NCBI GenBank assembly: GCA_038496445.1
Contig: JALMLS010000564.1
Coordinates: 62,001-126,000, forward strand
Source of the DNA: Trichosphaerium sp. ATCC 40318
Lineage: Eukaryota; Protista; Tubulinea
DNA: 64,000 nt
Direction of reading: 5' to 3'
This document shows positions 24,813 to 49,954 of this stretch, one piece after another (within the stretch, counting starts at the first letter, position 1; the number at the start of each line of letters is the position of its first letter). Below the pieces are notes generated by a model. It saw only the letters and a list, made by a program, of their open reading frames with translations. It searched no databases and was not told where the DNA came from. Both the position numbers and the translations under genes were made by a program.

Positions 24813-27067
24813 TTAAATGACAGATTTTCCGTTCTTTTTATTACGTTTTCTTCTGTTGAATGGCATTAGCCTATTTCTCCATGATTCTTTTGAAAATACA
24901 AGAACTACAAACAACAGAGCAACCTAACACTCCAGTTAATACACTGGTGTCATAATTAGAGGAGTGTACCATGACAACGCCAGCGACAACAATACCAGCA
25001 ATGATTCCAACATTGCTATTGTTGGACTGATGGTTACATTCATCTTTGAGCGAAAACACTATACTCAGCCTGTTGCAAGGATTAGTATGTTTACTACACA
25101 AGTGTTTTCATTGTGCTTTAGTACTTTTCTTGTGATAATTGTTGTTGGGTGCTAAAACAATCTTTGGTGCCACTCACAGAAGTGGCTTCACCAATGATAC
25201 AAGGTGATTGAATCGCAACTACCTTGTTTTTATCTATGTGATCTATATTGCTAACGTTGATATCGAATGAGCTTCCTTTTTCGAAGTTCACACAGCCTAA
25301 CAGCCAGTGAATACAGCTGGTAGATTTCAGAGTATGTGTACCTGTAACAATGAGAGTATTGTTGTTTGTCAAACTGAGTGACACATTACCCTTGTTTGTG
25401 AAGTTACCGGTAATTGTCACAGCGTCAGTTATTATCACTGGGGCAACGATTATTGTGTCGTTCATAAAAACACAACGTTGTTGCCCTGGAAGCCCACAAG
25501 ACAAGCAATCTTCTTTGTCGCATATTACTAATGAAGTATTAGTTCCATCCAATGGACAATGGCATACCGGGAGTTGTATCAACAGGCGGAGGTGATGGAA
25601 AAGTATCAATAGGCGGAAGTGATGTAGATGTATCAACAGGTGGAGTCGATAACTGTGTTGGTGCGCCATTTCCAAAACACGGTAAGGAGATGAACTCCTC
25701 ATACGAACTAAGCGGAACTAACAGGTATTAGCAGTATACCATACGCAACATGCGTACTATCACAACAAGAACCTGTTTCACCGCAGGTGAAACTTGTGTT
25801 ATCTAGATGCAATGAGTGCTAGGGCTTGTTTTGTAAGTACTTGTTAAAACGCACGTGCTATGCAAGAATGACCACAATCGCAGGTGTTTTCAAGATATAG
25901 CGTAGAGTTACAGTCATAGTTATTCGACGTGTTGTGTCCAAAGTAGGAACCTCTACCAAAGTGTTAGTGGTGCCAACACTGTATTATTTTTAAAGGTACT
26001 TTATTATTAGTGTAGACACAGCTATTGTTACTGGGCTATAAAATTGGTCAGATAAATGCGTTCAATGCGAAGTACCTTGCACATAGGTTGTTCTGAAAGA
26101 AAGAACTAGATATATTTACAGGTGAATCGAAGTCAATCAAACAACCTACCATTTGTCAACAAAAATTAACAAGGGAGAAAATGGGTATCCTGAAAGGTTT
26201 ACCTCCGTCATTGCTACTGTCAACTGTATTATCTACAAACGAGCAGTTTTTGATTACCACTTCCTTTACAAAGAGTAAGAACTATGAAAGATGTACCTAG
26301 TACATACACTAAAACCACCAAATAATCTTCGTTCTACATTGTTTACAGTGAGTTCATTACATTTTGAAAAAAAGATCAGTACCTCTAAGGATAGATTTAT
26401 AAAACGTAACAGTATTGTTAATTGATTGAACTCTTTCAATTGTCACGTGGTCACTATGTAAATGGTATTTTCAGAAAAAGTGATCTTACTTTCTGGAATA
26501 GTATTTTGGCGTACCATTCAACAAGATCTAAGGTGCTATCAGCGCCTGTGAACACTACGTTACTACAAGTCATTGTTAGCGTGATATCTTGTTTCCCTCT
26601 CTTACTCCAAATGCAAAGAAAGCGCCCCTGTGACATCCATAGAGCACGATGAAAAGACAACTCCTCGTAAGGTAATATTCTTTCCATTTGCCTGTATTTC
26701 GAGAAGATTCTTGTCACTTATATGAGGGGCTAAGACTGTATTGCTACCTTGATTTTTTTGCGTCAGATAACTACTCCGAATCTTTCGGCGTACCTTCAAT
26801 TACAATATTGTTTTGAATGTTTATGACATCAGAGGTATTTGTGATGCTAAAGGTCATTGTTTCGTTCAAAAAAAGTATGTTTGCGTTCAAGGTGAGGTAG
26901 CAACTGAATATATTACCACATGGATGCGCTGGTGAAGTGTGAACTACAATAAATTCTTTGTCAAAAAAAAAAGAACGAAGCCTGAGTTTACCTGTAAGAC
27001 AGTTTGTTTGAGTCATCAGTACGCTACATATGACACAGAAAACAAGGTTGAGTAAGCTTTTGTACAT
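24813..27067 (-). CDS. surface protein array copy 1 (signal peptide, beta-helix-like ectodomain, stalk, conserved juxtamembrane domain, TM, short tail)
   Basis: MYKSLLNLVFCVICSVLMTQTNC signal; PCGNIFSCYL; ITGNFTNKGNV; GCVNFEKGSSFDINV; AIQSPCI; LSIVFSLKDEC; TM; SKESWRNRLMPF tail. Confidence 0.85.
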
Positions 27068-27644
27068 TTTACACTTTTTGTAGTATTAAACACGTGATGA
27101 TTGTATTCGAAATGACTGTGATAAAGGCCTTGTGGTTAAGCAAAGGATGTAAATAAAATTTAGCTTTCTTCGGATTTTATGGTCAAATAAATTTTGAGAC
27201 TCAAATACAAAAGTCACGTGATACAAGCCTTTGTAGCCGTTTTTATTAACATAGATCCATTGAAATCGGGCGGGAAGCGGTAAAGCGCTTTCATTCTATT
27301 CCATGAATTTCGTAATAGTCTTTTCTAATCAAACCGATAAAACAGATCATTGAATGTCCCATAATATTATGGGAAAGGCACGAACTACAAGATGCAAGGT
27401 AATCTGTGGTACTAGAAAGGCCTTAAGGTTGCATTCAATACTATAGGAATGAGCCTTACAATGTAACTAATGCTTTTACTACCTCCACATTCCCAGTAAA
27501 ACAGGAATGCTATTCACTCGGAATTTTTACCACTTGTCTTTAAACAACGTTTATAGATAAACAGCGTTGTAAATAATTGGTAAGGTGGTACGGTATAGAT
27601 TTATTTGTGGGGAATGTATTGCAAGTTTCGGTACAAAACATCAC

Positions 27645-29952
27645 TTAATATGCAGGATGTTTTTTGTCATGACCTTTTCTGTTGTAGGGCATGATCTTAT
27701 TTCTCCATGATGCTATCGAAAATATAGCAACCAAGACCACTACTGCAATCTTAACACAAACAATTAACAATAGAGGAGGTACAAGCATTAATAAAACTGT
27801 AGACATTAATGTCTCTGGTGTACCAATATGATGACAGCAACAATGATTCCAAAAACAATACCAAGGGTGTTATTATCGGACTGGTCTTTACATGCGTCTT
27901 TGAGTAAAAAAACAATACTCAGTCTACGAAAGTAGTTGTTACGTATGTGCGGTTGTAGCGACTTTGCTTACTTGTCTTCGGACTGCAGTTTAGTGTTGAA
28001 GCAATCTTTGGTACCGCTTATAGAGAAGACGCCATCGTCGATGCATGGTGATTGAATGACATCGACCTCTTTTCCATCCACGTGATCAACATTGGCAACG
28101 TTGATATCGAAAGAGCTACCGTTTTCAAAAGTCACACAGCCTTCTTAAAGTCACGTAAACTCTTGTTAGATTGATCGTACCTTTGACATTGAGTGTGTTG
28201 TTATTTGTCAACTTGAAGATCACGTTGCCTCTGTTTGTAAAGTTACCATTAATAGACAAATTGTCCGATATGATTAGAACGCCATTGTTAACAATACTGT
28301 TATTAACAGCGCAGGGCTCTTGAGGAACAGGGCATATCAAACAATCTTCCTCTTCACATATCACTATGCTTTGTGTAAGTTGTACAGGTGCTGTATTAGA
28401 GTACATGTATTATTATTGGGAAGTGGTTGTGACACAAGCGTTGGTGGTTCAGATGGGGGTGGTATCAAGCATGGATATTTGGATACAAAGTCTTCAAACG
28501 ATGCTGGCTCGTCTACCAAGGTGGTTTTTAGCTTTTATTGTAATACGTATTCATACTTACCCTCACAACAGTCATTGGTGGATACACAAATAAAATTGTT
28601 TATGGTGCTACTAAGTTTGTTTAGATAGTAAAGTGGGAACGGCAGAATTGCTACTCACCATATTCTTGTGTTATTAGTACAATCGCAGTTATCTATGTCT
28701 AATGTGGAACAGCTATAGTAATTTGTATGTTGTATCCTACTTCCAAAGAAAGAGCTTCTTAACAAAAAACAAATGAGTTGAACAAGCACTTTATGATTAT
28801 TGATTGTGGTTTGTTGTACTGTATGGTAAGGTTTCCGGAAAGTATTGCATCATTCGTTTGACTAACAATACAACAAAAAAAGTAAGGAATTAAAACACGT
28901 GTTGTACTGTTACCACTCTGAGCATCCGTTGTCCTGAAAGTAAGTATTTAATATATCAAGAGGTGAACTTACATCAATCAACCACCCTATATTTATCAAC
29001 GATAAATCAATAAAACTTGTGTACCTGTTTTAAGTGAATTAATTAGTGTGTTATTAGTAAAAGAACAATCTTTGATTACCACCTCCTAAACGAAAATTAT
29101 GAAAAAACTCCGAAAGGCAGAGCACGTGCTTGTGTTGTATTAGTGCTTATACCTAACTAAAATTAGTGTTCAAAATGAGTTAGAACATTCAAACAATGAC
29201 GTACCTCTAATCAAATTATCAGTAATAGTATTTTTAGTGAAATGGCTATCAACAATAACAACTGCTCTTATGTCCTGGAAAAAAAGACCACACTCTGTAC
29301 TAGATTGAATTGTGTTTTCTCTAAATTGTACTCTTTCAAGGAGCAAGTGATCACTACGTAGTTTGTTATTCTTTTAAAAATTCGCAAGATATACTACCGC
29401 ACCAGAACGTGACATGCAAGATGTTGCATAAGTCTGTGTTGTTGAAAAATATGGTGTCCCTTGAAAGATTTAGTTCAGTTTTTATTTTTTTTTTTTCAAT
29501 CGTACTGTAGGTGTAGTGACACGTTTGAAATTACAACAGAGCACTCTGAAAACGCAATACCGATGATAGATAACTTTACATTAGCGTCTCCATTAATTAG
29601 AAGCTGATTGACGCCGGCTGCTGGGATAACTTCTGTTGAGTTACCTATTAAAATGGTTCAGTTAAAAGTTCTTGGGTGGGGTAACAATTGCCAATACCTG
29701 TAATAGTGAGGTTTCTTTGCATAGTTACATCTCCATGCGTTACATTTGCGAGGATGTGGCTTATTGTATTGTTTAAAATAATCTCTTTAGCGTCTAAATA
29801 GAGGTAACAAGCGACGACATTACCGCAGTCGTGCTCTATTGAAGTATGAACTAGTGGGCGTAAGTTTCAGCAGAGTCACTTCTATTACCTGTAGTGCAGT
29901 GAGATGACGCAATAATCAAGCACATAGTAATAAAAAAAAGAAGCTCGAACAT
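27645..29952 (-). CDS. surface protein array copy 2
   Basis: MFELLFFITMCLIIASSHC signal; DCGNVVACYL; INGNFTNRGNV; tail SIASWRNKIMPY. Confidence 0.85.
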
Positions 29953-30399
29953 ATTTGTGTGCACGGTCACGTGCTAATAAAAGTTAATGTAAGGAATAAT
30001 TAAGGTAGCGCGGAAAGTTTTTTTCCCCGCCTTTTTTGTGCACATTGTGAGTCTATTTACTTTTCAACTAGCTAGGCGAGCTTGAGTCTTTGTATTAAAA
30101 TAAAAATGTCTCACGTGCGTAAGTATGAGCGAAAGCCCAGACGCAACAATATTCCTAAAAAAGGCTCAAGGCACTACATTCAGCACACTATTATCATCCA
30201 GGTATTCAAGATACTGCAGGTAAAATTTACCTGGAGATCATTTCTTGCTGCCAGTCTTTATTGTTATGACATGGTCATAAAGCGATCCTCCCTGGTTGTG
30301 AATGGTGAGCAGTTATAGCCATAAAAAGTGGACGTTTTATGTAACGCGTTCACGTGGGTAACAACTCAGTTTATTTATAACAGGAAAAGTACTTGTGTA

Positions 30400-32805
30400 T
30401 CATATACTAGCGATATTGGTGCGTTCTTTCATGTGCTTCCTTCTGTTGAAAGGCATGATCTTATCTCTCCATGATTCTTTCGAAAATACGATAATCACAA
30501 ACAACACTGCAACCTTACAATACCAGTTAATTACAAGAGAACTTATGATTGCTTTAAATAAAAGAGAAACGCACTATGACAATGATTGCAACAATGATAC
30601 CAACGACAATTCCAACTGTGTTATTGCTGCTTTGGCTCTTGGATTGAGTATTGCATTCGTCTTTGAGTGAGAACAGTACACTTAGCCTATACAAGCTCAA
30701 TGTAAGTTTAAAGTATCATTATACTTGTTTTGTTGTCTTCTTGGGTCAGCATTGAAGCATGGCTCGTTTCCAGTTATTGAAGTGATATCGCCACTGATAC
30801 AAGGTGATTGTATAGCAACCACATCATTCTTATCGACATTATCAACATCAGTAACATTGATTTCAAACGAACTTTCTTCTCCAAAGGCAAGGTTCATACA
30901 TCCTTTCAAAAGTTTGTGAGAAACAAGAGAAAATAGCTATTTGCTTACCTTGAACAATGAGAGGGTTGTCGTTTGTCAACTTAAATATAACATTGCCTCT
31001 GTTTGTAAAGTTGCCAGTTATCGTAACAGGTTCTGTTATTATCAGTTGGCCTACATTAAGAACGTTACTATTAAACACACATCGGTCTTGTTTAGGAGAA
31101 GAACACTCTAGACATCTATCATTTGAACATATAACTAGCATAAAGTTAGCAAAAATTGTCTCAACAAAATCGCAGTACTGGAATCACTTGGTTGTACACT
31201 TGGCTGTACGCTTGGCTGTGAACTAGGTCGGTTGTCTGGTGTTGTTGGCATTGTAAACATGGGCGATGTTATCAGTGGAGGTGTTATACATAGGTAAGAC
31301 GACGTAAATTCGTCATAAGAATTGAGCACAGCTAGCAAGACAATAAATTAACAGAAAAAAGTAAGGCATCTTACTGTTGCAACAACCCTCTGGATACATG
31401 TAACAATTATCACGTGTTATGTTATAGCCTAGTAATTATTAGTCTTCTTTGTTGGTTAAATACCTACTTTCAGAGCAAGAGTTGGTTTTGTTACCACAAT
31501 CGCAAGTGTCTTCCAAAGTTGTATTGCAAGCAAAGTTATACGAAGTATTAGAACCAAAGTAAGAGCTCCTAAACAAGTTAGCAACATAACAATAATCGTT
31601 TTTATGTACTGTATTGTGAGGTTCTGAGAATGTATTGTTACGGATTCTTCACTGTTAAGTGACACAGTAAGTAAGGACAGATTAAATTCGTCAAAGCTAA
31701 TTTTTACGTACTATGAACACTGGGTGTTTTGAAAGAAAGAGTTTGAAATAATTAATGGAGCTTCGAAGTTGATCAAGCACCCTGTTTTCAAGATTAAATA
31801 CATCAACAGTGTTACTAAGAATAACCTGTGCTTTGGCTGTCTGATATAAAATTATTTACAAACGAGCTATTGCTGATAACCACTGGCTTTGAGAAGAAGT
31901 TTAACAACAACAAGTAAGATGAATTAAAGTACCCTTTCAAAATCATGTATTCCTCCATCTAAGTAAGGAATCATATTAGCAAAGGAATAACAGTATTGGG
32001 GTTACCATAAATTAAGGCATAAGAATCTTCAAGGTTATTATCAATAAATTGGGTGTTAGAAATGTCAACTGTTTTTACGCTTTTTAGCTGAAGGCAACCT
32101 CCACCAAGTAGCGACAGCGTAGAAATAGAGTTTCCACGAAATTCCACATTGTTAATAATCACTTGATCGCTATAAATAGAGGTTCAGTAACATCCAGAAG
32201 ATACTTCCCTTGGATATTTACTTATTTCGTACCAGCTTTCAATGCTCAAGAGACTTGGACCAATGATCGCCGGATCTGAGGAGTAGTTTAGGAACTTAGT
32301 GTTTCTAAACAAATTGTAAACTTCGCGTTGATTATTTTTTGATGTGACGCCATACTGAATACTCAAAGATTTCAGCTCGGTAAAAACTAAAGAGCATGAT
32401 TTAAACGTGATGTCTGTAAGGACAAACGACATTCTTTCCCCGAAAATGGTGAGCGTATCATTGGCTCTGTTAAGTGGAACTACTGTAGCGTTATTACCTG
32501 AGTATAAGGGTAAGAAAACACGCTTTCTGTGATTGTTTAATTTGAACCAAAAGTAGAGCACCTATTAGGTTGAGGGTGGACGTTAGCGTTATGTTGTCGC
32601 GTGTAGTAAGGTAATACGTTGCGGTTGCGTTCAATACAATCTCGGGAGCGCCTGACGATAGGTAACAATGCAAGAAATTTCCACAAGGAGGAGCTGTAAA
32701 TAATTAAATTATGTTTGTACAGAAAAAGACTTGACCTGTTTGCGCATGTGATAGGATAAAGCAAATACAATAAAACTGGAGGATTTTGAACACGTGTTGG
32801 CGCAT
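30400..32805 (-). CDS. surface protein array copy 3
   Basis: MRQHVFKILQFYCICFILSHAQ signal; PCGNFLHCYL; QPSV repeats in the stalk; ITGNFTNRGNV; tail SKESWRDKIMPF. Confidence 0.85.
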
Positions 32806-33175
32806 TATATGAAATGGGCTTTGAATATCAACGAACTGACTGGTTAAATATTATTTTTGGGTTTTAAGTGAATAAGGCTAAAACAAATAAAATGTGATTT
32901 CTTGTTGGTCAGCCCAAAGTTCACTAAACTGGTTTAGTTTTGTTGCATTGTTATTGAAAGGCTCAAAGACAGCTTGATATGATTACAAACTGACAGTGGA
33001 CTTATGAAACTATGCAGTCAAACCTTTGGGACCACAGTGACTTCATTTACAACTGGTGTTGTAAAAAGTGCGTGCTTTATTATCTTTTTATAAGATCATT
33101 CTAAGATAATTAAAGCTTCAAAGCGAATGCTTTGATTAGTGTTGATTGTAATTCTCATGTTTTTTTTGTTGCGTT

Positions 33176-35486
33176 TCATATAGCAACATTGTTGTGTTCT
33201 TTCAAGTGCTGTCTCCTGTTAAAAGGCATGACCTTGTTTCTCCACGATTCTTTTGAAAATACAACAACCACAAATAACACTGCAATCTTCAAAAGAAATA
33301 AGTTGTTGATAACCTTCATAAACTCGTACCAAGATGATGATGCCAGCGATGATTCCAAAAACAATACCCAAAGTATTGTTACTACTTTGGTTTTTTGATT
33401 GGTTGTTACATTCGTCTTTGAGTGAAAATAGAATACTCAACCTATGGTAGATGTTACTTAGATTGTGAATGACCTTAGCATACTTGTTGTTTTGAGAAAT
33501 TTGTTTTTCAGCATTGAAGCATGGTTCAGTGCCACTTATTGTAGTAGAACTTATGTCACCAGTAAAAGATTGAGATTGAATGGCTATAACCTCATTGTTA
33601 TCCACGTGATCAACATTGGCAACGTTAATAATGAAAGAACTCCCGGTTTCAAAGTTCATACTACCTTTAACGATGTGTTAAGCTAGCACTGATGTAGTGA
33701 TTTACCTTGAACAATGAAAGTGTTGCTTAGTGTTGAATTATTTATGAGCGTTAATATTGCACTGCCTCTGTTTGTGAAGTCGCCAGTTATCGTTATAGTA
33801 TCCATTAGAAGTAGTTGGCCAATGTTTAATACGTCTTTATCAATGATACAGCGCTGTTGAGAATCAGGACAAGACAGACAAGTTTCGCTAGAGCATGTTA
33901 TCACTGAAGAAGTAAAGTTAGTCTCAGCCAGTTTGAACAAAACATACACGATTGGTTTGAATTTGGTGGAGACATGGGCGCATTGGTAGTTGGCAACAAT
34001 GGTGTGCAACTACTGGCTAGAAACTCATCTATTGATGCAGGTTGATCTTTAAATATGTAAGAGTCTAGTACTTGGAAGCTAAGTGTACCGTTACAACATT
34101 CACTTAGGTCGATACAATCAGAAATAACACTAGTTCTATCTATGTTGGAGTGAGCTGTCTAAGGAAGTTATGTCATTTGAAACTCACCTGCGCAAGTGTT
34201 GTCACAGTCACAAATATCTTCAAGAAGTACTGTCATATTACAGGAGTAGTCAGTTGCTGTGTTGTTATTAAAATATGAGCGTCTCAAAAAAAAGTAAGCA
34301 AGGAGCGCCGTATTTAATTTATTTTAAGTGTACTGCATGTTTAGTCCTTGAGATACTATTGCTAATGCATACGGACTTTAAACAATTGTAAGGCAACTAA
34401 AGAATCACTTGTTTCGTACTCTGGGCATTGATTATTCTGAAAAAAACTATCTGAAATGTTCAATGGTGATTCTAATGTAATTAAACATCCTAACAATGTT
34501 AATCAACATTATCAATAATAGAAGAAGTCACCTTCGTCAAAGTTTGCAATTATGTTATTAATAAAGGAACAATTATGAAGTACCACCTCCTTGACAAAAG
34601 GTAAAGTTAAGGTTGAGAAAGTGATTATCTTTCACAAAGAATTTGCACCTGTATGTTCGGCTGTTCTGAAATGGCATTAATGAAAAAATCACTCTTTCAA
34701 AAGAAGAAAATAATGTACCTGAAATTGTAGGACCATTATTTAATTTGTTGTCTACAAATTGGGTATTGCTAATGCGTACGTGGGCAGTGCCTTGTATTCT
34801 GATACAACTGGCAGTACTGTTTAGTATATTTAGATAAAATTGTACTCCATTAAGTATCACGTGGTTGCTTTTAAAAAAGGTTAAGGATTTGTTTAATCAG
34901 ACACGTCAAACCATACCAGAAGTTGATACCCAACACATCTTTAGCACCCACATAGTCTGTAAATTTGATGTCCCTGAGTGCGGTTTAAAAAATAAAGATT
35001 GTGTTCTTAACGTACAAGAGGTTCAACGTTACAAAGGAAACACTTAAAGAGCATGACGAAAAAGAAATGCCTTCCATTGTCAACCTAATTGATTCGGTTG
35101 CGCCTGTAATTCCAATGAACGATCCCTGCAGTTGATTGTTGAGCCATTACCTACAATTATATTAGGCGGTCCTCCATATTAACGTGTAATTATGGAGTAA
35201 AGTGTGAGTAAATCGTACCAAAAATTGTTACGTTTCTTTTTAATGCGAATACCTCGTCTGCGGTACCATCAATGTACAGGACCATACTGTTGTTCAAAAT
35301 AAGTTCTGTAGCGTTCGTCATTAGGTAACAATGAAAGTCAGTGCCACATCCATGTGTTTCTGAAGGTCGAACTACGAATATCCATTACTCACACATAAAT
35401 TAATCGAAGGTACCTATTTCGCTATGCGATAACGTTATAGTAACGATAATAACGCAAGAAATTAGATAGAGCCCCATTCGTGCCAT
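33176..35486 (-). CDS. surface protein array copy 4
   Basis: MARMGLYLISCVIIVTITLSHS signal; GCGTDFHCYL; ITGDFTNRG; tail SKESWRNKVMPF. Confidence 0.85.
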
Positions 35487-35777
35487 TTGGTACAAAGCGA
35501 AAACATAATTAAAACACGTGACTTAAATCTTCTCGGTACCAAGTCACAAAGTAACTCTAAGGGACGAGAAACAATGTAGATGTAGTTACACTTTTACCTT
35601 GAAGTTCAAGAGACAATTCTTCGTGAAAATTATTTTTCGAAGAACAACTTTCTTTGCACAGGCGCCTCCAATTTTTTCGGAACATATGCAACGCCTACTC
35701 AACGTGCAGGTGTAAAACAGAAGTGTTACTTCGGTCAGTGTAAAGAAAGTGCTTTATTGGTAACCTATTTTGAGGCT

Positions 35778-38102
35778 CTAGATTCTCGTGTTTATTGCTA
35801 CTTTTTTGCGTTTGTTGTTCCCATGATTGAAAGGCATGATCTTGTTTCTCCACGATTTTTTCAAAAGTACAACGATAACAAACATTAATGCAATCTGCCA
35901 ATAATACTTAATTGTGAGAAAATATTGTCGACGGCAGTAAAGTTATCAATATTATTAGTTTTTATTGTTGACTTTGACCAGACTTTGCAATTACGCAATA
36001 ATGTTCCAGTTAAGCTGTTTTGTTCAGCAAGAAAAGTGCACCGTTGTTAATAATTGTTAATTTTTAATAACTTGACTGCCGTCGACTATAACTAGGCAAA
36101 ACTATTGTAGTATTCGTACCAAAACGATGAGTGCAAAAATGATTCCGAAAACAATACCAACTGTATTGTTGCTACTCGATTGACACTCGTCTTGTACTGA
36201 AAAAAAAATACTCACCCTATGATGAAGTTAGGTGTTGGCTACTGTTGATTACTAGCAGGTTTTTCGTACTTGGTTTGAGATGTTTGTTGTTGAGTGTTGA
36301 AACAATCTTTGGTGCCTCTCACTAAACTGATATCACCGCTGATACAAGGTGATTGAATGGCTACTATCTCATTGTTATCCACATGATCAACATTGTCAAC
36401 GTTAATATCAAATGTGCTTCCTTCTGCCAAGTTCACACATCCTTTTAAAATGTTATCAATATGTGACATAGTGATCAAGTAGACGTACCTTCAACAATGA
36501 GAGTGTTGTTGTTTCTCAAATTCAGAGTAACAATTCCCTTGTTTGTAAAGTTACCAGTTATTGTAACAGTACCCGCAATGATTATTGAATCGGTGTTCAC
36601 AACACTTCCAGAAATAGTGCATGGACTGGTTTGACACAATGTTGTTCCTACACCAACGTTGATAACTGGTAGGGAGCATAACGTACCCCATGGAAGTACT
36701 ACAGGAGTGGTCGTATTTGCTGATGTTGTTGGAGATATTGCTGGCACAGGAGTATTTGGCTGTGAGCCTAAACGAGTATTACTTTAAGTAAGCACCGGTG
36801 CTTACATTCGCAGGAACACTCGCTTTCAAGAGTGAAGATACACAAGCTACTACAGTTGTCATAGTTTGATCTTTGTGCCGTTGAATAGCAATTGTATGGA
36901 TTATATTGATCATAACATCCGTTTTTTGCCTCACAAGTATTACTGAAACAAAGTTATTATTAGAAAGGATAAAATAAATCATAACTGTATAATTGTTACT
37001 GGGTTGCCACGAAATAATGAACTATTTAACGATTGGTCTCTATCAAACAAATAAGTAATTTAGAAAATAATCAAAGCTAATAGATCACCCGCAAGTATTG
37101 TTCACAATAGTGCAATTCGTTAAGATCAAATGCATACTTGTCTGTACAAGGCAATCGTCTTTTGAGAACACATTCCGAATAAAATGTGAGTCCGTTATTT
37201 CAATACTTCCTTCATCATGTTCTTTACTGCCTATAACATAACCAGTATTGCCAGAATTTGCCATTCGGCTAGAAACATGATTGTTGTTTTTGAATATACA
37301 ACCCAAAAAGGATATCTAAGTGTTTTAGTGCTTTGTTGAGACTGCATTGTACTTCTTGTGTTATTAATTCTAACTCCACACAGATGCGGTTGTAGCTGAA
37401 CGATGTTCCAGTAATATTGACATTACTCCTAAGCACTCTCAGACGTTGAAAACGTGTTTTAAAAGAAGGCACCCTTTTGATATCGTCAGTGCGGTGTCTG
37501 CATTGTTGTCAAACTGAGCATTTCTTAAATATAGGTAAGTTAACGCAGTTTCTGTGCCATGTCGTACGTGATATTGACGAATGAAGCATTGGACACAACA
37601 AGCGCACAATGCTTAAAACAGAGACGCTCTATCGTCACATTAAACCCATTACCATTTATAGATAATACACTCCCTGTGATTGACGAACGCCCTTCAAAAC
37701 CTTATGAAAATCGGTTACAAAAAAATCACACGTGATCAAACGTTATTTTCTTTGGCGAAACGTAATAAACGTTTGTAAACTTTTTTGGTAGCTTTTTGTT
37801 AGAGTCCGTTTTCAGATCGTAGTACGAACCTGGGCGAATAAATAGGTTTTCTGTTAGGTTTATAGTAGTACTACTCTCTACGTAACAGCAGTCTTCGTTT
37901 AACTCAATGTCGCTAGTATTTTCATTTTCAAAGTAGTTGTAGCAGGGAATGCTGGTTCGACGTTCTACAAATGTGGTTGGCTCGCCGTCACCAGTAAGAG
38001 GAAAAAATAATGGAGATAATATTGTTGTATACCTGTAACATGACAGTGCGTGAGTGGAGTACTGATACCAATAATTCCAATAACTAAAAGCAGGCTATTC
38101 AT
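35778..38102 (-). CDS. surface protein array copy 5
   Basis: MNSLLLVIGIIGISTPLTHC signal; ITDSHFIRN-type beta-helix repeats; ITGNFTNKG; tail LKKSWRNKIMPF. Confidence 0.85.
35923..36090. mobile_element. MITE-like insertion (~168 bp, ~27-bp imperfect terminal inverted repeats, TA ends) in the last intron of copy 5
   Basis: tattgtcgacggcagtaaagttatcaa (35923-) is the reverse complement of ttaataacttgactgccgtcgactata (-36090) at 24/27 positions. This intron is ~220 nt versus ~40-60 nt in sibling copies. Confidence 0.65.
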
Positions 38103-38260
38103 TTGTTGATTCTGTTTTATTAGAATTCACAATCCTTAATTCAAGTAGGGTGAGTCAGGAGAAATTCGGCATCTCGCATTTGAGTTATAAACTGAGATGG
38201 GAACAGAACTTAGAAATGTTACTAACAATCTATTTATGTAGCACTAATGACGTTATAGCG

Positions 38261-40541
38261 CTATAACGTTGCTTGGCGGTGTGTTTTAGCGTTACGACTG
38301 AATGGTGTGATCTTGGCTCTCCACGATTTTTTCGAAAATACAATAAGCACAAACACCACGGCGACCTTAAACAAACCAATCAGCAAGAACTTGGCTTGAA
38401 TGAAAACGTTCATACCAAAACGATGAGTGCAAAAACGATTCCAAAAGCAATACCAATTGTATTGTTACTACTCGATTGACACTCGTCTTGTACTGAAAAC
38501 AGAATACTCAACCTATGCGAAGTTAGCTGTTTGTCACTGATTATATTTATTACTTGGTTTGAGATGTTTGTTGTTGAGTGTTGAAACAATCTTTGGTGCC
38601 TCTCACAGAACTGATATCACCACTGATACATGGTGATTGAATAGCTACTATCTCATTGTTATCCACGTGATCAACATTGTCAACGTTAATATCGAATGTG
38701 CTTCCTTCTTCAAAGTTCACACATCCTTTTAAAATACATCAATATGTGACGTAGTAATCAAGTAGATGTACCTCTAACAATGAGAGTGTTGTTGTTTGAC
38801 AAATTGAATATCACGTTTCCCTTGTTTGTAAAGTTGCCAGTTATTGTAACAGTACCCGCAATGATTATCGAATCGGTGTTCACAACGTTTCCAGAAATAG
38901 TGCATGGACTGGTTTGACACAATGTATCTACTTAAAGGTTTATCTAATTGTATTAAACAACATCACATACCATTTATCCCGACAGATGGTACTATTGGGG
39001 CGTCTGTGTTCATTGCTGGAGTTTCTGTTGGAGCGTTTGCTGGCGTAGGTACTTGTGATGGATAAGGGGGTGTATCTATTGGTGAAAGTGTATTTGGTGC
39101 TTGGGTGTATATTGGAGGAAGCGTTGCTAGTGTGCCTAAATCAATGTGGTTAGTAAAAGAAAGTTGAGTATTTAGTAGCATACAATGGCAGGAACAAATG
39201 TTATTGAATAGTTTAAAAACTGTGGAGTTACTCGGACAAATCCCGCAATCTGCACTTGTTTGTACTTGTGTTGAATAACAATTCAATGGATTTAATGAGC
39301 CCATTTCATTACATCCGTTTGGCTCACAATTATTTCTTGAAGAAGTTAGTTCGTCAATAAGAACAAAAAGTTGCGTAACTGTATTGACAATACTTCGGTG
39401 TGGAATAGTGATGATGCGCTATCATAGAAATAAGTACATACACAATAGAGTGTAGTAGAATATGAACCTTGGGCAGTTGTTATTTATAAAGAAACAGCTG
39501 TTGAACGACAAGGATGAGTTGGATACTACAAGACAACCTAATCCTTGTTGTTCTGACATGTTGTTAGTAAAATTTGAGCGTGTTATTTCAACATCTGTTC
39601 CTTCTCCAATAACTTGTATAACAAAACCTATTTCGTCTGAAGCCATTCGTTTCGTAGTGGCTACATATTCGTTATTGCTGAACTTGCAATCAGATATGGA
39701 TACCTATCGCTATGATTAGAAAACAATTTAATACCGCTCACATACGCTATCAATTATATCTAACAGCACGCTCTTTAAACGATTTAAGGAAAATACAGCT
39801 CCTGTGATGTTCACTTTATTCCTACACTCATTTAGTTGTAACGTTCAATATTAGAGGCAGTACCCTTTATATATCGACAACGAGGTTTTTTGGTTGTCCT
39901 TGAACTGGCAATTACTTAAATGTAGTTTAAGAACAAGGAGTGCACTGAGCAGAAGAAGTACCGGATGTTGGTGACTGCTGCATTTTTTATGTCAACCGGT
40001 GACGAAAGAAAACAAATACCATCAAGCGTCACATTAAACCTGTTAGCATCTATTCCAACTTTGCCCTTGCTTACTTTCGCCATTTCGAAGGGCTCTACTA
40101 AACGACATTAGACATCTATTACTCTGGAAGTACTTTTCATGAAAATCGAAAAAATTCACGTGACAAAACTTATTCTAAGATCTGGTTACTTATCGCTTAG
40201 AAGGTGCGGGAACTCTGTTTTAATCGCATAGCGAGTATCAAAAATTACTATAGGAACCTGAGCGAATTACTAAGTTCCGAGTAAGAGGTATTGGATAACC
40301 ATCTACTGGAAGCCATGCGGTGTCTGTAGTTAAAACTATTTCGCTTATATCTTTAATCTCCAAGTAACAAGTTAAGTTTGTCGTACAGAGGTGTTTTGTG
40401 CTAGCGCGTACTGTCGTTCATACCAAAGTAAGCGTTCCGGAGAGACAAATTTTTTTCTACGTTTGTACCTGTAAAACAGAGCGCAGGTTGAATAGCAAAG
40501 CTGATACACCCAAGTACACCAAAAACAAATAAGAGCTTCAT
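38261..40541 (-). CDS. surface protein array copy 6
   Basis: MKLLFVFGVLGCISFAIQPALC signal; LCTTNLTCYL; long P/T stalk; tail SKKSWRAKITPF. Confidence 0.85.
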
Positions 40542-40877
40542 AATTCGAGTAATTACCAGTTTGTTACGCTTGTGAATTCGCAATACGGCTTAATAAACGT
40601 CCAGTGACTTAACAACTCAAATCATTTGTGTTGAAAAAGAATAAAACCTACTAGATGCTGGAATTAGTTATCATCGCATCTTGTGGGTTAGGTGTTAAAC
40701 TCAGATCTTTGCGCTTACCAAAGAGTAGAAAAGTGTAACAACAGTAGCACGGTCGTATACAATTTTCTGGTGAACAAAAACGTATTATGACTCTTGATTG
40801 TGGTGTTTCTATTAACAGTGAAGAGCATTAATTCAGAGTTATACAATAACAGAACATTTATTGTGCTTAAATAGCTT

Positions 40878-41082
40878 TTATAATGCTGTTTTACAGTGCG
40901 TTTTTTTCTTACGACTGAAAGGCATGAGTTTATCTCTCCAAGATTCCTTCGAAAATACAACAATCACAAACAACACTGCGAAGGCACAATTTTGGTGTAC
41001 CTGAAACACACTGTGCCGGCTGAATAATAACGCTTAACGCCCCAATTATTATAATGGTAACAATACTAACTAAATGATGCAT
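40878..41082 (-). pseudogene. internally deleted array copy: signal-peptide exon joined directly to the last (TM-tail) exon; possible mini-gene
   Basis: MHHLVSIVTIIIIGALSVIIQPAQCVS|gtacacc... abuts ...VLFVIVVFSKESWRDKLMPFSRKKKTHCKTAL*. All internal exons are missing. Confidence 0.75.
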
Positions 41083-41899
41083 TTTATACAGTCAGGTTGG
41101 TGGCTATGTTCTAAAATTTCTACGAGAAAGTAAGACTTTTTTTCAGAAAAAACAAGAAGTGTTTTGTCGCATTAAAAACTTAATCATACGCTACACATAC
41201 GTTGGTAGTTTCCATAATGTCTACTACACCCAGACTGAATTTTTACTGTCAAGTTAACAGTAGTAATTTTGGTACCACGTGGAAAGGCGTCATGCAAACC
41301 GCTCTCAACAGAGCTGATACTCCTAGTAAATATGTACAACTAACTGTTTGTTGAGAGTGTAGCGTAAATGGGACAAATAACATCCTGTACCAGAGTTTGA
41401 CATAAATTTCTGTTCCTTGCTACCCACCCCTCCAAATCTTATATGTTCTGGAAACCAAGCGAGGGCTCTATGTGTAAGTTGATTGCGAAGAGGAACCTGA
41501 GGTTGTGCTAGCAAACTGGTGGCTATTTTTTTAACGTTAAGCCTGCTTTTAAAAGGCCACTCCCGATTTGTTGCACGCACGTGATATTCAGCCCGAATAC
41601 TCACGTAAAGTACTCTACATAGTACACAAACCATCACGAAAAATCGAGTTTAGCTAACTCGAAATAGCGATATTTCAGGTCAAATCCGTTGAAAATAGGA
41701 AGTCACAACTTGGGTGTCCTGAAAGCTTTGTTTACGCAAATAGAAAAATTTGTAATTGGCAAGGAATACATGCCACAACGGAGAAAGAAGTTGGTTCTCA
41801 CCTTTTTTTGGAAACAAGGCTGAATTATGTCTAAGTTGAAAAGCATGTGATTGACCATTGCGGTATTCATATTTACTTCGATTCAGTTTACACTGATAT

Positions 41900-44054
41900 T
41901 TATAGGGCCCTTTGGTGCCGCGTTTGTGTTTTAAGATTAAAAGGCATAATCTTGCGTCTCCATGATTCTTTTGAATACACAACAATCACAAACAACAATG
42001 CAATCTAAAAAGTAATCAATTTTGATAAGTTAAAGTAAAGTTAAAGGTCGTACCAAGATGATGATGGCAGCGATGATTCCAAAAACAATACCCAAACTAT
42101 TGTTACTACTTTGGCTTTCGGATTTAGTGGTGCATTCATCTTTGAGTGAAAATAGAACACTCAACCTACGAAAAGGTTAAGGAAGTGCTCAAGTTATGTT
42201 TTCTTACTTATTTTTAGATGTTTGCTGCTCTGTGATAAAGCAATCGTTGGTACCACTAACAGAGCTGATATCACCGCTGATACACGGTGATTGGATGGCG
42301 GTGATCTCATTGTTATCTACATGGTTAACACTGGTAACATTGACATCAAATGTGCTTCCTTCTACTAAGTTCACACATCCTTTTAAAAAGGCTATCAATA
42401 TGTGACATAGTGATCAAGTAGACATACCTTCAACAATGAGAGTGTTGTTGTTTCTCAAATCCAGAGTAACAATTCCCTTATTCGTAAAGTTGCCAGTTAT
42501 TGTAACAGTACCCGCAATGATTATTGAATCGGTGTTCACTACACTTCCAGAAATAGTGCATGGGCTGGTTTGACACAATGTACTGAGAGATGTCGTAGGT
42601 GTTTCTATCGGAGCCTCTGTAGTCGGCACTTGCGTTAGAGGCTCTGTAGATGGTATGTCTGTTGGGGATAATGTAGGAACGTCTGATAGGGTGGCTTAAT
42701 GAGTGTTCTTAGAAATAAACAAAAGAAATTTATGCAATACCGCAGGAGCAATTTGCATCGGCTTGAAGAGATAAGGAACAATTTCCGGTTACAAATTGTT
42801 GTGCGCCTAAAGTACAAGAATGTAGACTCTCATCTTGGTTATTTAAGCATCCAGTTGGTACACAATCAATATTTCTTGTACGTTGTTAGTAGCGTTCAAT
42901 ACACCGAAATCGTAACTGCATTGACAACTCCGGACTATGAAACAATGATAATGCTCTGGAGAAGAAATAAGGAAAAGAAGGAGTTGACTATTACAGACTT
43001 GTTACAATCAATATCCTCGAAGGTACAGTTTCTAAAGATCAAAGGTGCATCCGAAACTGCAAGACAACCAAAGCCTTCAATAGGGCTAAAGATGTCTTGA
43101 AACATTGATCCGCTTACCACAGCGTGTCGGTTGGCTGTGATGTCTAAAACAGCACCAATGGGACCAAAATCAAACTGCCCGGATCCTATCATTGTTTGGT
43201 AAGATACTGGCATACGAGAAGGATACTAAAATATCTTGCACACTTACTAAGGAGTCGATTATCCTCAAAATCACAATCGCTGATTGATATCTGTTTTGCT
43301 TAGTTAAAATACCTCAACATGCACTTGTACCTCATCAATTGATTGTAAAACCAGTACTCCGAATTGATTATCAATGAACTTGGTTTTACTTATCGTAACG
43401 CGTTTCCTAAGTTCGTAGTTGGAAAAAAGTAGAAATACAAGTTATGTACGCTTGTGAAATCGATAGAGAGCGGCGTATAAGAGTTTTAGAGAATCGAGAA
43501 TTTCTTAACAAAAGGTAAGATGTAAAGGGAAAGATATAACAACCAAAAAGCGTACAAGATATTGACGCGTAATGCGTTTTTTATTTCTAGTGGACCAGTA
43601 AAATTTAGATTAATTAGAGTAATATTAAAGCCACCAGCGTTTATAGCTGCAGTGGTAGGGTATGTTCTCACTGATACAATATTGAGATCTTGGGAAAGGA
43701 TCAGAATCCTGAGGTTAGAAAAAAAACACGTGATTAAAAAAAGGTTTCCATTCAGTTTAATTTTTACGAACCGGATGATTTCAAAACAATGCTTTGATTA
43801 AGTACTATATCATCGCTTGCACGTAGTTCGTATATTGTGTTAGTATCAAAAACTATTTCGCTTATATTTTCTTTCAGCAAGTAACAAGTTATGTTGTTCA
43901 TACAAGCGTCAAACAAGCTTGCTACTACTATTGTAGAAAAGTTAAATAAATATTTAGAATGTACGTATTATAGGTCAGGCGTACTTATTTGACCACCTTT
44001 GGTCGCAATGGCTGCATACCCAATAATAATAAAAGTCAATAGCCAGACATTCAT
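41900..44054 (-). CDS. surface protein array copy 7
   Basis: MNVWLLTFIIIGYAAIATKG signal; ACMNNITCYL; INAGGFNITL; GCLAVSDAPL; tail SKESWRRKIMPF. Confidence 0.85.
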
Positions 44055-44269
44055 CTTAATTGTTTGATTTGGGTTTTAGTAAAACGAAAGTCCAAACCAT
44101 CCTGCACTTACTTAATTTGTTAGGCCAAACCATCCGACTTAAAAGCTTCGGATGACGGTTGTAGATAATGGTGCAAACTGGTAGTATCCGTAGTAAAAAA
44201 ATTTAGGTACTGCTGAGATTTGAGACTTAAATACTGGTATTTACTACATTGTTTCAGTGAACGATATTC

Positions 44270-44490
44270 AACACTGCTTTGGCTGAGCGTGGTGTTAGCC
44301 TCCAGGTAGATATCAATGTCATCTAGAATTACTTCGGTTATGTTGTAGCGTTCCAAGTAACACGTTAAGCTGTTGACGCAAGGATCAGCTGAGTTTACTG
44401 TCACTGTGGTATTAAAGTAAGCGCTCCATCAAGAAGGCACAATTTTGGTGTACCTGAAACACACTGAGCCGGCTGAATAATAACAAACTG
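44270..44490 (-). pseudogene. 5' remnant (truncated exon 1, intron 1, part of exon 2) of an array copy
   Basis: IIQPAQCVS|intron|TVTVNSADPCVNSLTCYLERYNITEVIL. There is no in-frame ATG upstream, and the sequence runs into the upstream region of copy 7. Confidence 0.75.
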
Positions 44491-44872
44491 ATCTTATGTT
44501 CCGAAATAAAATTCCAAAGAGAAACTTAAGACTGACTGTTTCAGAAAATATCAGCCAACCCACAAGTTTCCAGAACAAGAAAATGGTTTTCTTGCTGTAC
44601 CCCTAATGCGAATTTACAGAAACTTAGTTGCTTCTAATACGATACAAGTGCAACTTGTAAACAAAATGACTATAAAAGTCTGAGAAAGGCACAACTAAGT
44701 TACTTGTATTTTACTTCTTAATTATAACAGCGTTCCGGCCTATCGGTTAATAGCATTGTATTTTAGCGCGGAGCACAACTGGTAGAATTATGTAAGTTTA
44801 TTTAAAGCACACGTGCAATCACGTGATTGCCATTTTCGTTATTTATAATTTTGCCTCGTTTTCAGTTTAAAT

Positions 44873-47072
44873 TTATAGTGCCCTTTGGTGCCGTGTTTGC
44901 GTTTTAAGATTAAAAGGCATAATCCTTTGTCTCCATGATTCTTTTGAATACACAGCAATCACAAACAACAATGCAATCTAAAAAGAAATGAAATAAAAGT
45001 TGAAGTAAAGAAAGGTCGTACCAAGATGATGATGCCAGCAATGATTCCAAAAACAATACCCAAAGTATTGTTACTACTTTGGTTTTTCGATTGGTTGTTA
45101 CATTCGTCTTTGAGTGAGAATAGAATACTCAACCTAAGAAAAGAGTGTTACGGAAGTGTTCAGCTATATATCATGTTTTTCTTACTTGTTTGTAGATGTT
45201 TGCCGCTCTGTGATAAAACAGTCTTTGGTTCCACTTACAGAACTGATATCACCGCTTATACATGGGGATTCAATGGCAGTGATCTCATTGTTATCCACAT
45301 GGTCAACGTTTGTAACATTGACATCGAATGAACCTTCTTCCAAATTCACACATCCTTTTAAAATACATCAATGTGTTACATAGTGATCAAGTAGATGTAC
45401 CTCTAACAATGAGAGTGTTGTTGTTTGACAAATTGAATATCACGTTGCCCTTGTTTGTAAAGTTACCAGTTATTGTAACAGTACCCGCAATGATTATAGA
45501 ATCAGTGTTCTCGACATCACCGGTAATGGTGCATTGACTGCGTTGACACAAAGGTGTCATTGGAGATGTCGGTTGTGTTTCCATCGGGGCGTCTGCAGTC
45601 GGCAGAGACTCTGTGGGACTCATTGCTGGTGTGTCTATAGGATCATCTGTTGGAGCGCCTGGTGGGGACAATGTAGGAATATCTGATAGGTGATTAATGA
45701 ACTTTCTTAGAAATATACAAAAGAGATTAATGGAATACCACAGGAGCAGTTGGCACAAAACTGATCAACCGCAAAGTTTAGGGAACAATTTCCAGCGGTT
45801 GCCATTGGTTGTTCGCTTGAAGAACAAGAATGTAGATCCCGAGTTTGGTTACTTAAGCACCCAGCTGGTCCGCAAAAAACATTTCTTGAAAGCTGTTAGT
45901 AGAATGAAGCACTACGAAAATCGTAACTGCATTGACAACTCTGGGCTATGAAACATTGATGATGCTCTACAAAGAAATAAGGAAAAAGAAAGGACAAACG
46001 TTTGCAGACAGTGGACAGGCAGTATTCCTGAAGGTACAGCTGTTAAAGATCAAAGGTGCATCCGAGACTGCAAGACAACCGTAGCCTGAAACACTGCTCC
46101 AGTTGTGTTGAAACGTTGATCTACTCACTACAACGTCTCCGTTGGCTTCAGTGATGTCTAAAAGTGCAGCAATAAAATTCGATGAGAACGGATTCATTCG
46201 TTTCGTAATATCTATGGCGTTTGTTAATACAAGCACTTGTACTATAAGATGATATAAAGACAGAAAAAACACGTACAAGTCAATTGATTATTCATAAAAT
46301 GACAATCGCTGATTGACACCTGTTTTGTTATAGTTAAAATACCTCAGAGTAACTATGTTGTACCTCATTAACTGATTGTAACACCAATACTTTGAAGTTA
46401 TTATCAGTGAACTTGGTCTGGCTAATCATCACGCTTTCACTAAGTACGTAGTTGGAAAATGTAGAAATACAAGTTACGTACACTTCTGAAACCTGTAGAG
46501 AGGGATACGGATCATAAGTTGTAGAGAATTGACAATTTCTTAAAGATGTAAGATGCAAAAGGTAACAGCCAAAAAAAAATCGTACATGATTTTGACATTT
46601 GATGCGTTTTTTATACCAAGCGGCCCTGTAATATTTAGGCCGTCTAAAGTAATATTAAAGCCACCAGCGTTTATAGATGCAGTGTCCGGAAATATAGGGA
46701 GCGTCAATATTGAAACTAGCGTATTTTGGACTTGGAGAGAAAACAAGTAAGTATCTCAGAAGGTCAGAAAAAAAAACGTGATTAAAAATAGTTCTGGGAT
46801 AAAGAACCTGCTTGTAAAATAATGTTTTGTCCGAGCACTATATCATCGTCTACATTTAGTTCGTATACTGTAACATCTTCAAAAATTATTTTACTTATAT
46901 TTTCTTTCATCAAGTAACAATTTAGGTTGTTCATACAAGCGTCATTCAAGCTCCCTTCAACTAATGTAGAAAGCTTAATCTATAATTTCCAAACTTATTA
47001 GGTTGGCGTACTTATTTCACCTTCAGTAATAGCTGCATACCCAATAATAAATGCCAATAACCAGATATTCAT
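44873..47072 (-). CDS. surface protein array copy 8
   Basis: MNIWLLAFIIGYAAITEG signal; ACMNNLNCYL; INAGGFNITL; tail SKESWRQRIMPF. Confidence 0.85.
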
Positions 47073-47851
47073 TGTTTCAGAATTTATTTTTTTTTGATTT
47101 AGCGCTAAACTAGTTGCCTGTAACTTCCAAATGGTCGTCACACGTTACTTCAAATAAGTGACTTATGACTTTTCGTACGACTAAACGCGAACTTTATCAA
47201 CGTAAGTTTCTCGTAGAATTTTTTTTCCGGAACATAAGCAACGCCACTGAAAAATGCGTGATTGGTTGCCATAGGTGTTAAGACTTTTTGCAATATCAGC
47301 CAAGCCCGCAAGTTCCCACACAAAATAGTTTTCTTGCAGTACTTCTAATGCAAATTTACAGAAACTTAGTTGCTTCTTATAAGATACAAACTGAGAAGAG
47401 TATCTGTGAAAGGTTCTGATAGGTATTTTACGTGTTGCAATGATGCTTGTACCAATATTTTTCATGAACATCGTTTGAATAACGATTGTGTTAACTGTAA
47501 ATGTGTTTGTAAGACTGTTGGTTTCTATAATGCATTGTAGTATCGCATAGATGAATGAAGATACAAGAATAAATATATTGTCTTTCGCTACAGCAAGTGC
47601 AACTTGTATAATGACTATAAAAGTCAAGTAAAATATCAAGATACTTGATGTGCAACAACCCTCAAACACTTTCTTCTATCGTTTAATGTGATAATACCAA
47701 TATGACTATGTTACTTCACATACGATGAGGGACCTCAGTGGACTTTGACAAAGAGTTGTATCAGACGAATATGATTGAAAAAGAAATCAACATTATAAAC
47801 TTAGAAAGGCACAACTAAGTTACTTGTATTTTACTTCTAGTCACTTTACAG

Positions 47852-49954
47852 TTACTTTGATAGTGCCTTTTGGTTCCTTGTTCGTGTCTTACGATTAAAA
47901 GGCATAATGGTTTCTCTCCATGACTCTTTTGAAAACACGGCAATCACAAACAACAACGCAATCTATAAACAAAGCAAATCAATTTGGATAGCCAACATGA
48001 AAGTGTAAAGTTAAAGTCCATACCAAGATGATGATGCCAGCAATGATTCCAAAAACAATACCCAAAGTGTTGTTACTACTTTGGTTTTTCGATTGGTTGT
48101 TACATTCGTCTTTGAGTGAAAACAGAATACTCAACCTGCGAAAAGAGAGTTAAGGAAGTGCCCAAAAAACACTATGTTTTTCTTACTTATTTTTAGATGT
48201 TTGCCGCTCTGTGATAAAACAGTCTTTGGTTCCACTTACAGAACTGATATCACCGCTGATGCAAGGAGATTGAATGACAGTAATCTCATTGTTATCCGCG
48301 TGGTCTACGTTAGCAACGTTGATATCAAATGAACTTCCTTCTTCCAAGCTCACACATCCTATTTAAAGTTGTCAAATGGTTGATTATTTGATGCAAGTAG
48401 ATGTACCTTCAACAATGAGAGTGTTGTTGTTTGTCAAATTGAATATCACATTTCCCTTGTTTGTAAAGTTACCAGTTATTGTTACAGTTGCCGCAATGAT
48501 GATCGAGTCAGTGTTCTCGACATTGCCCGTAATGGTGCATGGACTACTTTGACACAATGTGGTTGGAGGTAATTTAGGAATATCTGACAGGGCGAGTGAA
48601 TGAATGTTCTAAGAAATAAACAGAAAGAAATTTTGGATTCCATACCACACGTGGAGCAAGAAGCGTTTACATGAACAGCATCACTGTTTAGTGAACAATT
48701 GCTACTACATACCCCTGTGTTTGGTAATGAACAAGAATGTAGACCATAAGCGTTATCTAAGCACCCAGCTGGCTCCCAAACAATATTTCTTGCACGCTGT
48801 TAGTAGTTTTGAGTACAACCAAAATCGTAACTGCATTGACAACTCCGGACTATGAAACAATGAGGATGCTCTGGAGAAGAAATAAGGAAAGAAGGTGGAG
48901 TTGAATTTTACGAACAGTGGACATTCATTATCCTCGAAGGTACAGTTTGTAAAGATCAAAGGTGCATCCGAAACTGCAAGACAACCAAGGGGTGCAGCAC
49001 CGCTGTTGTGTTGAAACGTTGATCTACTTACTACAGCAGATTGGTTGGCTTCAGTTATGTTCAAAACAACACCAACAAAAAACTGTTCGAAAATATTTGG
49101 GTTACTAGAGTCTAGGCATTGTTTAGCGCTAGTAAATAAGAAGCAATAACTTACTGTTATTCTCAAAAGAACAATCGCTAATTGATAGCTATTTTGTGAA
49201 GTTAAAATACCTCACATGTATGCACCTGTACCTCATTAATTGAGTGCGCCACCAATACTCCGAAGTGATTGTCAATGAACTTGCTATGGCTAATCATCAC
49301 TGTTTCACTAAATGCATAGTTGAAAAAAGTAGGAACTACACGTTAAGTACACTTCTGTAATCGCCAGAGAGGGATACGGAGCATCAGTTTTTCCAAAGAA
49401 ATGAGAACGTCTAAAAGAGGTAAGATGAAGGGAAAGTTTATCAAGCAAAAAAGCGTACAGATATTGACGCTTAATGCGTTTTTTATTTCTAGTGGACCAG
49501 TAAAATTAAGATTAATTAGAGTAATATTAAAGCCACCAGCGTTTATAGACGCAGCTTTCCCATCCGTATCGAATGTCGATATTGAAACGGCGCTATTAGG
49601 TGCTTGGAAAGAAAGAATCAGAACCTTGGGCACAAAACACGTGCTATAAAAAAATTGTTGCTATTCAAAGTTTAATTTACGAACCTCGCAAAATAATGTT
49701 TTGTCTAAGTACTGTGTCATTGTTTGTATGTAATTCGTAGCTTATTGTTTCATTTTCAAAAACTATTTCGCTTATATTTGCTTTCAGCAAGTAACAAGTT
49801 ATGTTGTTCATACAAGCGTCAGACAAGCTTGCTGCTACATTGTAGAAAAGTTAAATATTTCGCCTAAACGTATTGGGGCAGGCGTACTTGTATCACCTTT
49901 AGTCGCAATGGCTGCATACCCAATAACAATAAAAGTCAATAACCAGACATTCAT
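47852..49954 (-). CDS. surface protein array copy 9 (very short stalk)
   Basis: MNVWLLTFIVIGYAAIATKG signal; ACMNNITCYL; stalk only DIPKLPPTT; tail SKESWRETIMPF. Confidence 0.85.

Follow-up and report, generated by a model that had tools for sequence, protein, structure and literature searches.

Introduction

The molecular basis of prey choice, algal attachment and giant-virus avoidance in free-living amoebae is poorly understood, and a tandem gene array in Trichosphaerium, a marine, multinucleate member of the Amoebozoa, raises the question of what a set of surface proteins with divergent outer parts and a nearly constant base might do. The array was analysed within a 64,000-nt stretch of the genome of Trichosphaerium sp. 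ATCC 40318 (contig JALMLS010000564.1, positions 62,001 to 126,000, forward strand), hereafter the window, to which all coordinates refer. It spans positions 24813-49954 and holds nine full-length paralogues, g1 to g9, arranged head to tail on the minus strand, with 13-16 exons and 493-558 amino acids each. On balance the array probably represents a lineage-specific birth-and-death family of type I membrane glycoproteins, putative adhesins or ligand-recognition proteins. Protists commonly have expanded families of variable surface proteins, so this kind of system is in itself unsurprising; targeted literature searches found no description of its particular build, in which a beta-helix head, a mucin-like stalk and a domain resembling the end of a bacterial passenger are followed by a transmembrane helix. 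In this array the candidate binding proteins form a defined set, with a mapped variable face and a near-constant base, and the question is thereby opened to experiment.

The array and its proteins

Gene models were obtained by iterated splice modelling and then checked by hand against the exon phases of the paralogues. They reproduce the nine head-to-tail, minus-strand paralogues and two remnants counted in a preliminary description of this DNA, and when the window is compared with itself, nine 3' blocks that resemble one another appear between 24.8 and 50 kb. The similar exon layout proposed in that description applies to the order of domains, common to all nine proteins, and not to the exons themselves, of which there are two arrangements (13 in g1-g5 and 16 in g6-g9). 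Introns are short (median 47 nt), and all 121 that were modelled have GT-AG borders; the donor sites of g1-g9 are mostly of the form GTAC (GTACGA, GTACGC, GTACGT, GTACAT) and not the usual GTAAGT. The GC content of the window is 33-41%, and that of the published draft genome of this amoeba 37.7% (PMC10521059).

Each protein begins with a hydrophobic signal-type N-terminus, followed by an N-terminal cap (N-cap), repeats ending in FxxN, a cysteine-rich block, a Pro/Thr/Ser stalk that differs greatly in length among copies, a conserved membrane-proximal module of about 118 residues, a transmembrane helix and a tail. The N-cap carries the motif C-x5-C-YL, of which g5 lacks the first cysteine, and there are three to six FxxN motifs per head and 12-19 N-glycosylation sequons per protein. 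The single transmembrane helix stands out clearly (19-residue hydropathy 3.2-3.7, against at most 1.7 elsewhere), and the tail beyond it is basic, 23-27 residues long, with a conserved juxtamembrane SWRxKxMPF. A tail of this length with no recognisable domain does not support the preliminary label of receptor in the signalling sense, and any signalling would require a partner that binds SWRxKxMPF.

Searches outside the window used single exons, open intron read-throughs (g9 intron 13, g6 intron 14, g7 intron 3, g1 intron 7) and transcript proteins as queries. With the module of g9, a search of 1.84 billion representatives returned three true relatives, P0001, P0003 and P0005, all from MMETSP-derived transcript data. 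P0001 differs by one substitution from residues 143-495 of g2 (exons 5-12) and continues into the last intron, which is retained, and P0003 matches the C-terminus of g7 (residues 427-558), also with one substitution; the splice models of g2 and g7 are therefore independently supported by transcript proteins. P0003 is labelled as taxon 498012, Trichosphaerium sp. ATCC 40318, and the other two bear no organism label. P0005, a complete paralogue of 616 amino acids encoded outside the window, is 23-25% identical to the array proteins and built in the same way, but its GGA/FxxN repeats are more plainly Pmp-like. Two very large protein collections held no sequence relatives beyond Trichosphaerium/MMETSP transcript records, none were found among viral, metagenome and prokaryotic genome contigs, plasmids, PDB sequences or NCBIfam, and three protein searches, which cover proteins of similar length sharing exact words, gave back the query alone. 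Two further candidates, P0002 (SdrD-like) and P0004, were dismissed as repeat or cysteine noise.

The variable head

The preliminary description had proposed a right-handed beta-helix for the repeats, and several lines of evidence point the same way. Pfam Beta_helix matches to the heads lie below the curated cut-off (E 7e-4 to 0.04, the lowest on P0001:1-118). An AlphaFold model of P0005, run with array exons included in the alignment, has a mean predicted local distance difference test (pLDDT) score of 72.6; most of the head and module scores 75-94, whereas the cysteine block and stalk score low. Its head matches solved right-handed beta-helices at Z 21-24 over 250-300 residues, with a root-mean-square deviation of 2.3-3.8 A, and shows three-sheet coils, hydrophobic and asparagine stacks and an N-terminal helical cap, with which the array heads are in register. 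The array heads are accordingly predicted to form right-handed parallel beta-helices of the pectin lyase-like type. They had been called barely alignable between subgroups, a view that proved too pessimistic: at 17-38% identity the heads of the two subfamilies align by profile with a probability of 98.9 (E 4e-17, 207 columns), in the same register and with the same N-cap, and on this alignment they are clearly homologous.

A fold shared with many carbohydrate-active enzymes invites the view that the proteins are membrane-tethered polysaccharide lyases or hydrolases that digest algal or bacterial walls, with the substrate tuned in each copy. The nearest solved folds do include PL6 alginate lyases, AlgE epimerases and tailspike depolymerases, but the list of matches is flat; tailspikes, epimerases, PL6 and PL9 lyases, GH110 and the Streptococcus pneumoniae adhesin PfbA (Z 23.4, 2.8 A over 283 residues) all share the fold at 6-15% identity, and no family stands out. 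Foldseek matches to giant-virus beta-helices were likewise set aside as generic (10-11% identity). Columns conserved in at least eight of ten heads are core F/I/L/V/C/G/T, ladder asparagines and the N-cap tyrosine, together with the cap cysteines. No D/E/K/R/H within the helix is common to six or more of the ten heads, a comparison that is blind to subfamily-specific sites but argues against a conserved enzyme, and the groove side is the most variable part. Neither Pfam nor NCBIfam searches gave an enzyme match, and the heads hold no conserved catalytic set of the kind that the preliminary description had named as evidence against its proposal. This Trichosphaerium strain is reportedly seaweed-digesting, and even so we regard a family of digestive enzymes as improbable.

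Divergence, selection and gene conversion

A variable head on a constant base had been proposed, and the contrast is borne out domain by domain. Between subgroups the modules are 51-84% identical, and the ratio of nonsynonymous to synonymous substitution rates (dN/dS) among g1-g3 is 0.73-0.80 in the head and 0.10-0.13 in the module by counting, or 0.91 and 0.14 by likelihood, so that the uniform divergence with a head ratio far below 1 that would tell against the proposal was not observed. Differences per first, second and third codon position are 0.26/0.24/0.23 in the head and 0.08/0.10/0.30 in the module. Site models (M2a against M1a) for g1-g3 give twice the log-likelihood difference (2dlnL) as 44.1 for the head, with omega of about 7.5 on 28% of sites, and 0 for the module, a result that favours diversifying selection in the head. 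The signal was kept when four codons around gaps and two around splice junctions were masked (p 4e-5), and when double-base changes were allowed (p 6e-4).

The variation is not spread evenly around the coil. With the coil register assigned by hand, 23 of 58 T3-loop columns are gapped or differ in every sequence, whereas outside these loops the figure is 11 of 112 (p 1e-5), and the groove side as a whole (T3 loops, PB1 and T1) is more variable than the remainder (57 of 91 columns against 29 of 79, p 0.001). In GH28 beta-helices the T3 loops shape the groove and its specificity (PMC8952511).

Several points weigh against reading these heads as selected binding surfaces. No part of a beta-helix is looser than its T3 loops. 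The selection test compares three sequences, g1-g3, by our own code; masking of gap flanks combined with freely fitted double-base changes brings p to 0.24 (0.017 with the double-base rate fixed at the value of the module), and wide masking to 0.83. Import of short tracts from diverged donors, a process outside the simulations described below, could mimic the signal. The protein that was folded is P0005, which is encoded elsewhere in the genome and shares only a quarter of its residues or less with the array members. Moreover, some beta-helix 'adhesins' of Candida bound no glycan and had no adhesion phenotype (PMC8746771). Because masking of gap columns strips away the loops themselves, neutral loops were simulated as an alternative check, with indels, realignment and double-base changes, and among 56 simulations the maximum 2dlnL was 25.5, against the 44.1 observed.

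The same data could be viewed as those of a variable glycosylated surface coat, whose loops diversify to evade binding by giant viruses, bacterial parasites or predators, or merely drift under patchwork conversion, and not to acquire new ligands. Heavy predicted glycosylation, a mucin stalk, a tail that lacks signalling features, a selection signal that weakens under masking and conversion in patches would all suit such a coat, and the many genes of giant-virus origin in this amoeba suggest long contact with viruses (PMC10521059). The bias of variation towards the groove side, however, is what one would expect of a binding site, although an attacker could use the same face, and the neutral-loop simulations disfavour pure drift. 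A coat of this kind is a lesser possibility that nevertheless deserves to be kept in mind.

Three conversion tracts were retained (Table 1), short 'tracts' of 20-50 nt on conserved motifs being left out of the count. The tract that g6 shares with g1 and g2 fits one exon almost to its borders, while on either side the introns and exons show 68-72% similarity or none. For g4 and g5, synonymous divergence (dS) is 0.20 in the module and 1.32 in the head, and the two trees seem to disagree, the module tree having lost the groups g1-g3 and g4-g5 that the head tree shows. Conversion alone was rejected as the cause of the constant base, since among g1-g3 the dS of the module (0.44-0.85) equals or exceeds that of the head (0.34-0.42) while its dN is low (0.06-0.10). 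Judged from these patterns, the base owes its constancy partly to purifying selection and partly to conversion between copies.

One base is missing from the head of g1 and of g6 relative to the paralogues, and both frame breaks were read through with X. The dN/dS of the module in comparisons that include g1 (0.10-0.13), which is no higher than that between g2 and g3, together with the loss of two module cysteines in g6, indicates that these lesions are either recent or assembly errors; the joint loss of the two cysteines suggests that they formed a disulfide pair and that the gene was functional until recently.

An array in which surface genes vary, undergo conversion and leave remnants also recalls antigenic variation, in which one copy would be expressed at a time. 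Every full copy, however, has its own start, signal peptide and spacer, neither an expression site nor a set of silent cassettes was seen, and g2 and g7 are both present in the transcript data, which are bulk data and so compatible with switching. Antigenic variation in this strict sense is very improbable.

The membrane-proximal module

The conserved module that the preliminary description had recognised has a predicted fold of its own. In comparisons of predicted models with predicted models, the ESM Atlas model for residues 423-552 of P0005 aligns with autotransporter-type proteins at a TM-score of 0.69-0.76 over 120-127 of 130 residues, and DSSP assignment on the AlphaFold model resolves the module into three coils and a terminal hairpin. 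Neighbours by language-model features include clusters of Pertactin (0.87), the rOmpB passenger (0.86) and AC_1 (0.81), all below 0.9 and of use as leads only. The module is thus predicted to fold like the C-terminal end of bacterial autotransporter passengers, where the autochaperone (AC) region lies (PMC5767081). No match to PF18883, PF03212 or bacterial proteins was obtained in profile, plasmid, prokaryotic contig and PDB sequence searches. In contrast to the AC end, the module is disulfide-rich and split by introns; what follows it is a single transmembrane helix and short tail, and not the C-terminal beta-barrel of type Va systems. Nor can it template the head by direct stacking, as a cysteine knot and a mucin stalk lie between the two helices.

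With no sequence homology to bacterial proteins, common ancestry of the module and bacterial passenger ends is no more than a possibility. A bolder scenario is that a free-living amoeba rebuilt an autotransporter-type passenger as a modular recognition repertoire, in which a constant platform would dock a shared signalling or uptake partner and selection together with segmental conversion would vary the groove so that prey, symbionts or viruses could be told apart; as a whole, this scenario is unlikely.

Comparison with known systems and proposed function

In function the array proteins may be most like the Awp proteins of Candida glabrata and the Pmp-like proteins of trichomonads, by analogy, and they belong to neither family. 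Awp1, Awp2 and Awp3 are members of an expanded eukaryotic family of tandem genes, with an N-terminal right-handed beta-helix that is pectate lyase-like but lacks a conserved active site, and a Ser/Thr-rich spacer (PMC8746771). Features of their own are a glycosylphosphatidylinositol (GPI) anchor, a helix that runs straight into an alpha-crystallin cap, and loops that are long at T1 and short at T3 (PMC8746771). In the array proteins the head helix has long, variable T3 loops and is followed by a cysteine-rich block, and the chain ends with another beta-helix, of the passenger-end kind, next to the membrane, a transmembrane helix and a basic tail. No sequence match was found between the families; a GPI anchor and an alpha-crystallin cap are absent, and no beta-sandwich follows the head in the P0005 model. 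The trichomonad proteins likewise lie at the surface of protists and have beta-helix repeats of the FxxN kind and a single transmembrane helix; they have been reported to increase adhesion and to lack polymorphic middle and autotransporter domains (PMC6701047). They carry repeated GGA[ILV] and an ATPITK motif, and their tails often hold an endocytic NPx[YFW] (PMC6701047). The array members share the repeated FxxN, but GGA[ILV] is found in none of g1-g9 and twice in P0005, and Pfam searches of the array gave no match to the Pmp repeat or middle domain.

Among amoebozoans, the Tgr proteins of Dictyostelium are also multi-copy, fast-evolving type I surface proteins; they have Ig-like TIG/IPT ectodomains and act through allelic polymorphism and a paired ligand and receptor (PMC12745789). 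The comparison raises the possibility of a locus for kin or self-recognition of the TgrB1/TgrC1 type, for instance one that controls cell fusion in a multinucleate amoeba, and the array has the tandem arrangement, rapid evolution, type I topology and gene conversion commonly seen at such loci (PMC12745789). What varies here, however, is paralogues and not alleles; each of the two transcript proteins shows a single residue change relative to the genome, although P0003 probably comes from the same strain as the genome. No pair of ligand and receptor or distinct receptor tail is evident, and TIG/IPT domains are absent by Pfam search and from the P0005 fold, which agrees with the preliminary view that the family is not homologous to Tgr. 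A kin-recognition locus strikes us as quite improbable.

For the adhesin or ligand-recognition family that we favour, a working model can be outlined. A short second beta-helix, tied by disulfides and ending in a hairpin, would sit at the base, and the cysteine-rich knot and mucin-like stalk above it would hold out the N-capped helix. Along its groove side the head would bind an outside ligand non-catalytically, most likely the surface glycans of prey, of algal walls or of the substrate, and selection after duplication would push the groove loops apart, so that copies came to bind different ligands. The base, fixed by purifying selection, may serve as a rigid pedestal or as a site for a common partner, and short conversion tracts and unequal crossing-over would homogenise it further and yield the remnants.

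Other features of the array and its surroundings

Table 1. Positions of genes, remnants, example domains and conversion tracts in the window.
Feature	Position	Strand	Description
g1	47852..49954	-	13 exons, 493 aa; one base short at ~49459 relative to g2/g3
g2	44873..47072	-	13 exons, 529 aa; transcribed (P0001)
Head of g2 (example, exons 2-8)	45928..46960	-	N-cap and ~7 predicted right-handed beta-helix coils; T3 loops vary most
Proximal module of g2 (example)	45100..45554	-	~118 aa; three predicted beta-helix coils and terminal hairpin
Remnant 1	44291..44484 (approx.)	-	N-cap exon, preceded by intron 1 and the end of exon 1, from a g4-like copy
g3	41900..44054	-	13 exons, 509 aa
Remnant 2	40878..41082 (approx.)	-	Signal-peptide exon 1 fused to last (transmembrane/tail) exon; internal deletion
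g4	38261..40541	-	13 exons, 535 aa
g5	35778..38102	-	13 exons, 502 aa; 168-nt insert within last intron
g6	33176..35486	-	16 exons, 533 aa; apparent one-base frameshift at ~35130; two module cysteines lost together
g7	30400..32805	-	16 exons, 558 aa; transcribed (P0003)
g8	27645..29952	-	16 exons, 522 aa
g9	24813..27067	-	16 exons, 513 aa
Conversion tract, g6 with g1 (48135-48021) and g2 (45136-45016)	33324..33444	-	Same exon, 97-98% identical
Conversion tract, g5 with g3 (42562-42369)	36431..36623	-	96% identical; includes an intron
Conversion tract, g4 with g2 (45497-45381)	38752..38868	-	97% identical

The intergenic spacers of the array measure 158-1358 nt. The two remnants have 52 nt in common at 98% identity, and on this evidence both derive from one g4-like copy. 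Spacer blocks upstream of remnant 1 (44547-44718) and of g2 (47292-47838) are 84-92% identical, and about 150 nt of upstream sequence is common to g1 and g3, which implies that promoter DNA forms part of the duplication units. The insert in the last intron of g5 (35923-36090) is bounded by 27-nt terminal inverted repeats that are 89% complementary, and looks like a small non-autonomous element.

The hexamer CACGTG occurs 48 times in the whole window, where about 11 occurrences are expected; examples lie at 49638, 43727, 40157, 37729, 35515, 32791, 29968 and 27091. It is placed in the long second intron of g1, g3, g4 and g5, and at most 30 nt from the start codon in g6-g9. Possibly it is a genome-wide promoter or enhancer motif that is placed differently in the two subfamilies.

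Outside the array, an intron-less open reading frame of 497 amino acids (55318-56811, minus strand) has a weak F-box-like N-terminus and many leucine-rich repeats, the last of which continue past the stop in a second frame, suggesting a frameshift. Other neighbours include exons of ordinary eukaryotic genes, namely a Ras-family gene (16647-17048, minus strand), an exportin-5-like gene (9906-10268, plus strand) and a RhoGAP-like gene (61359-61799, plus strand).

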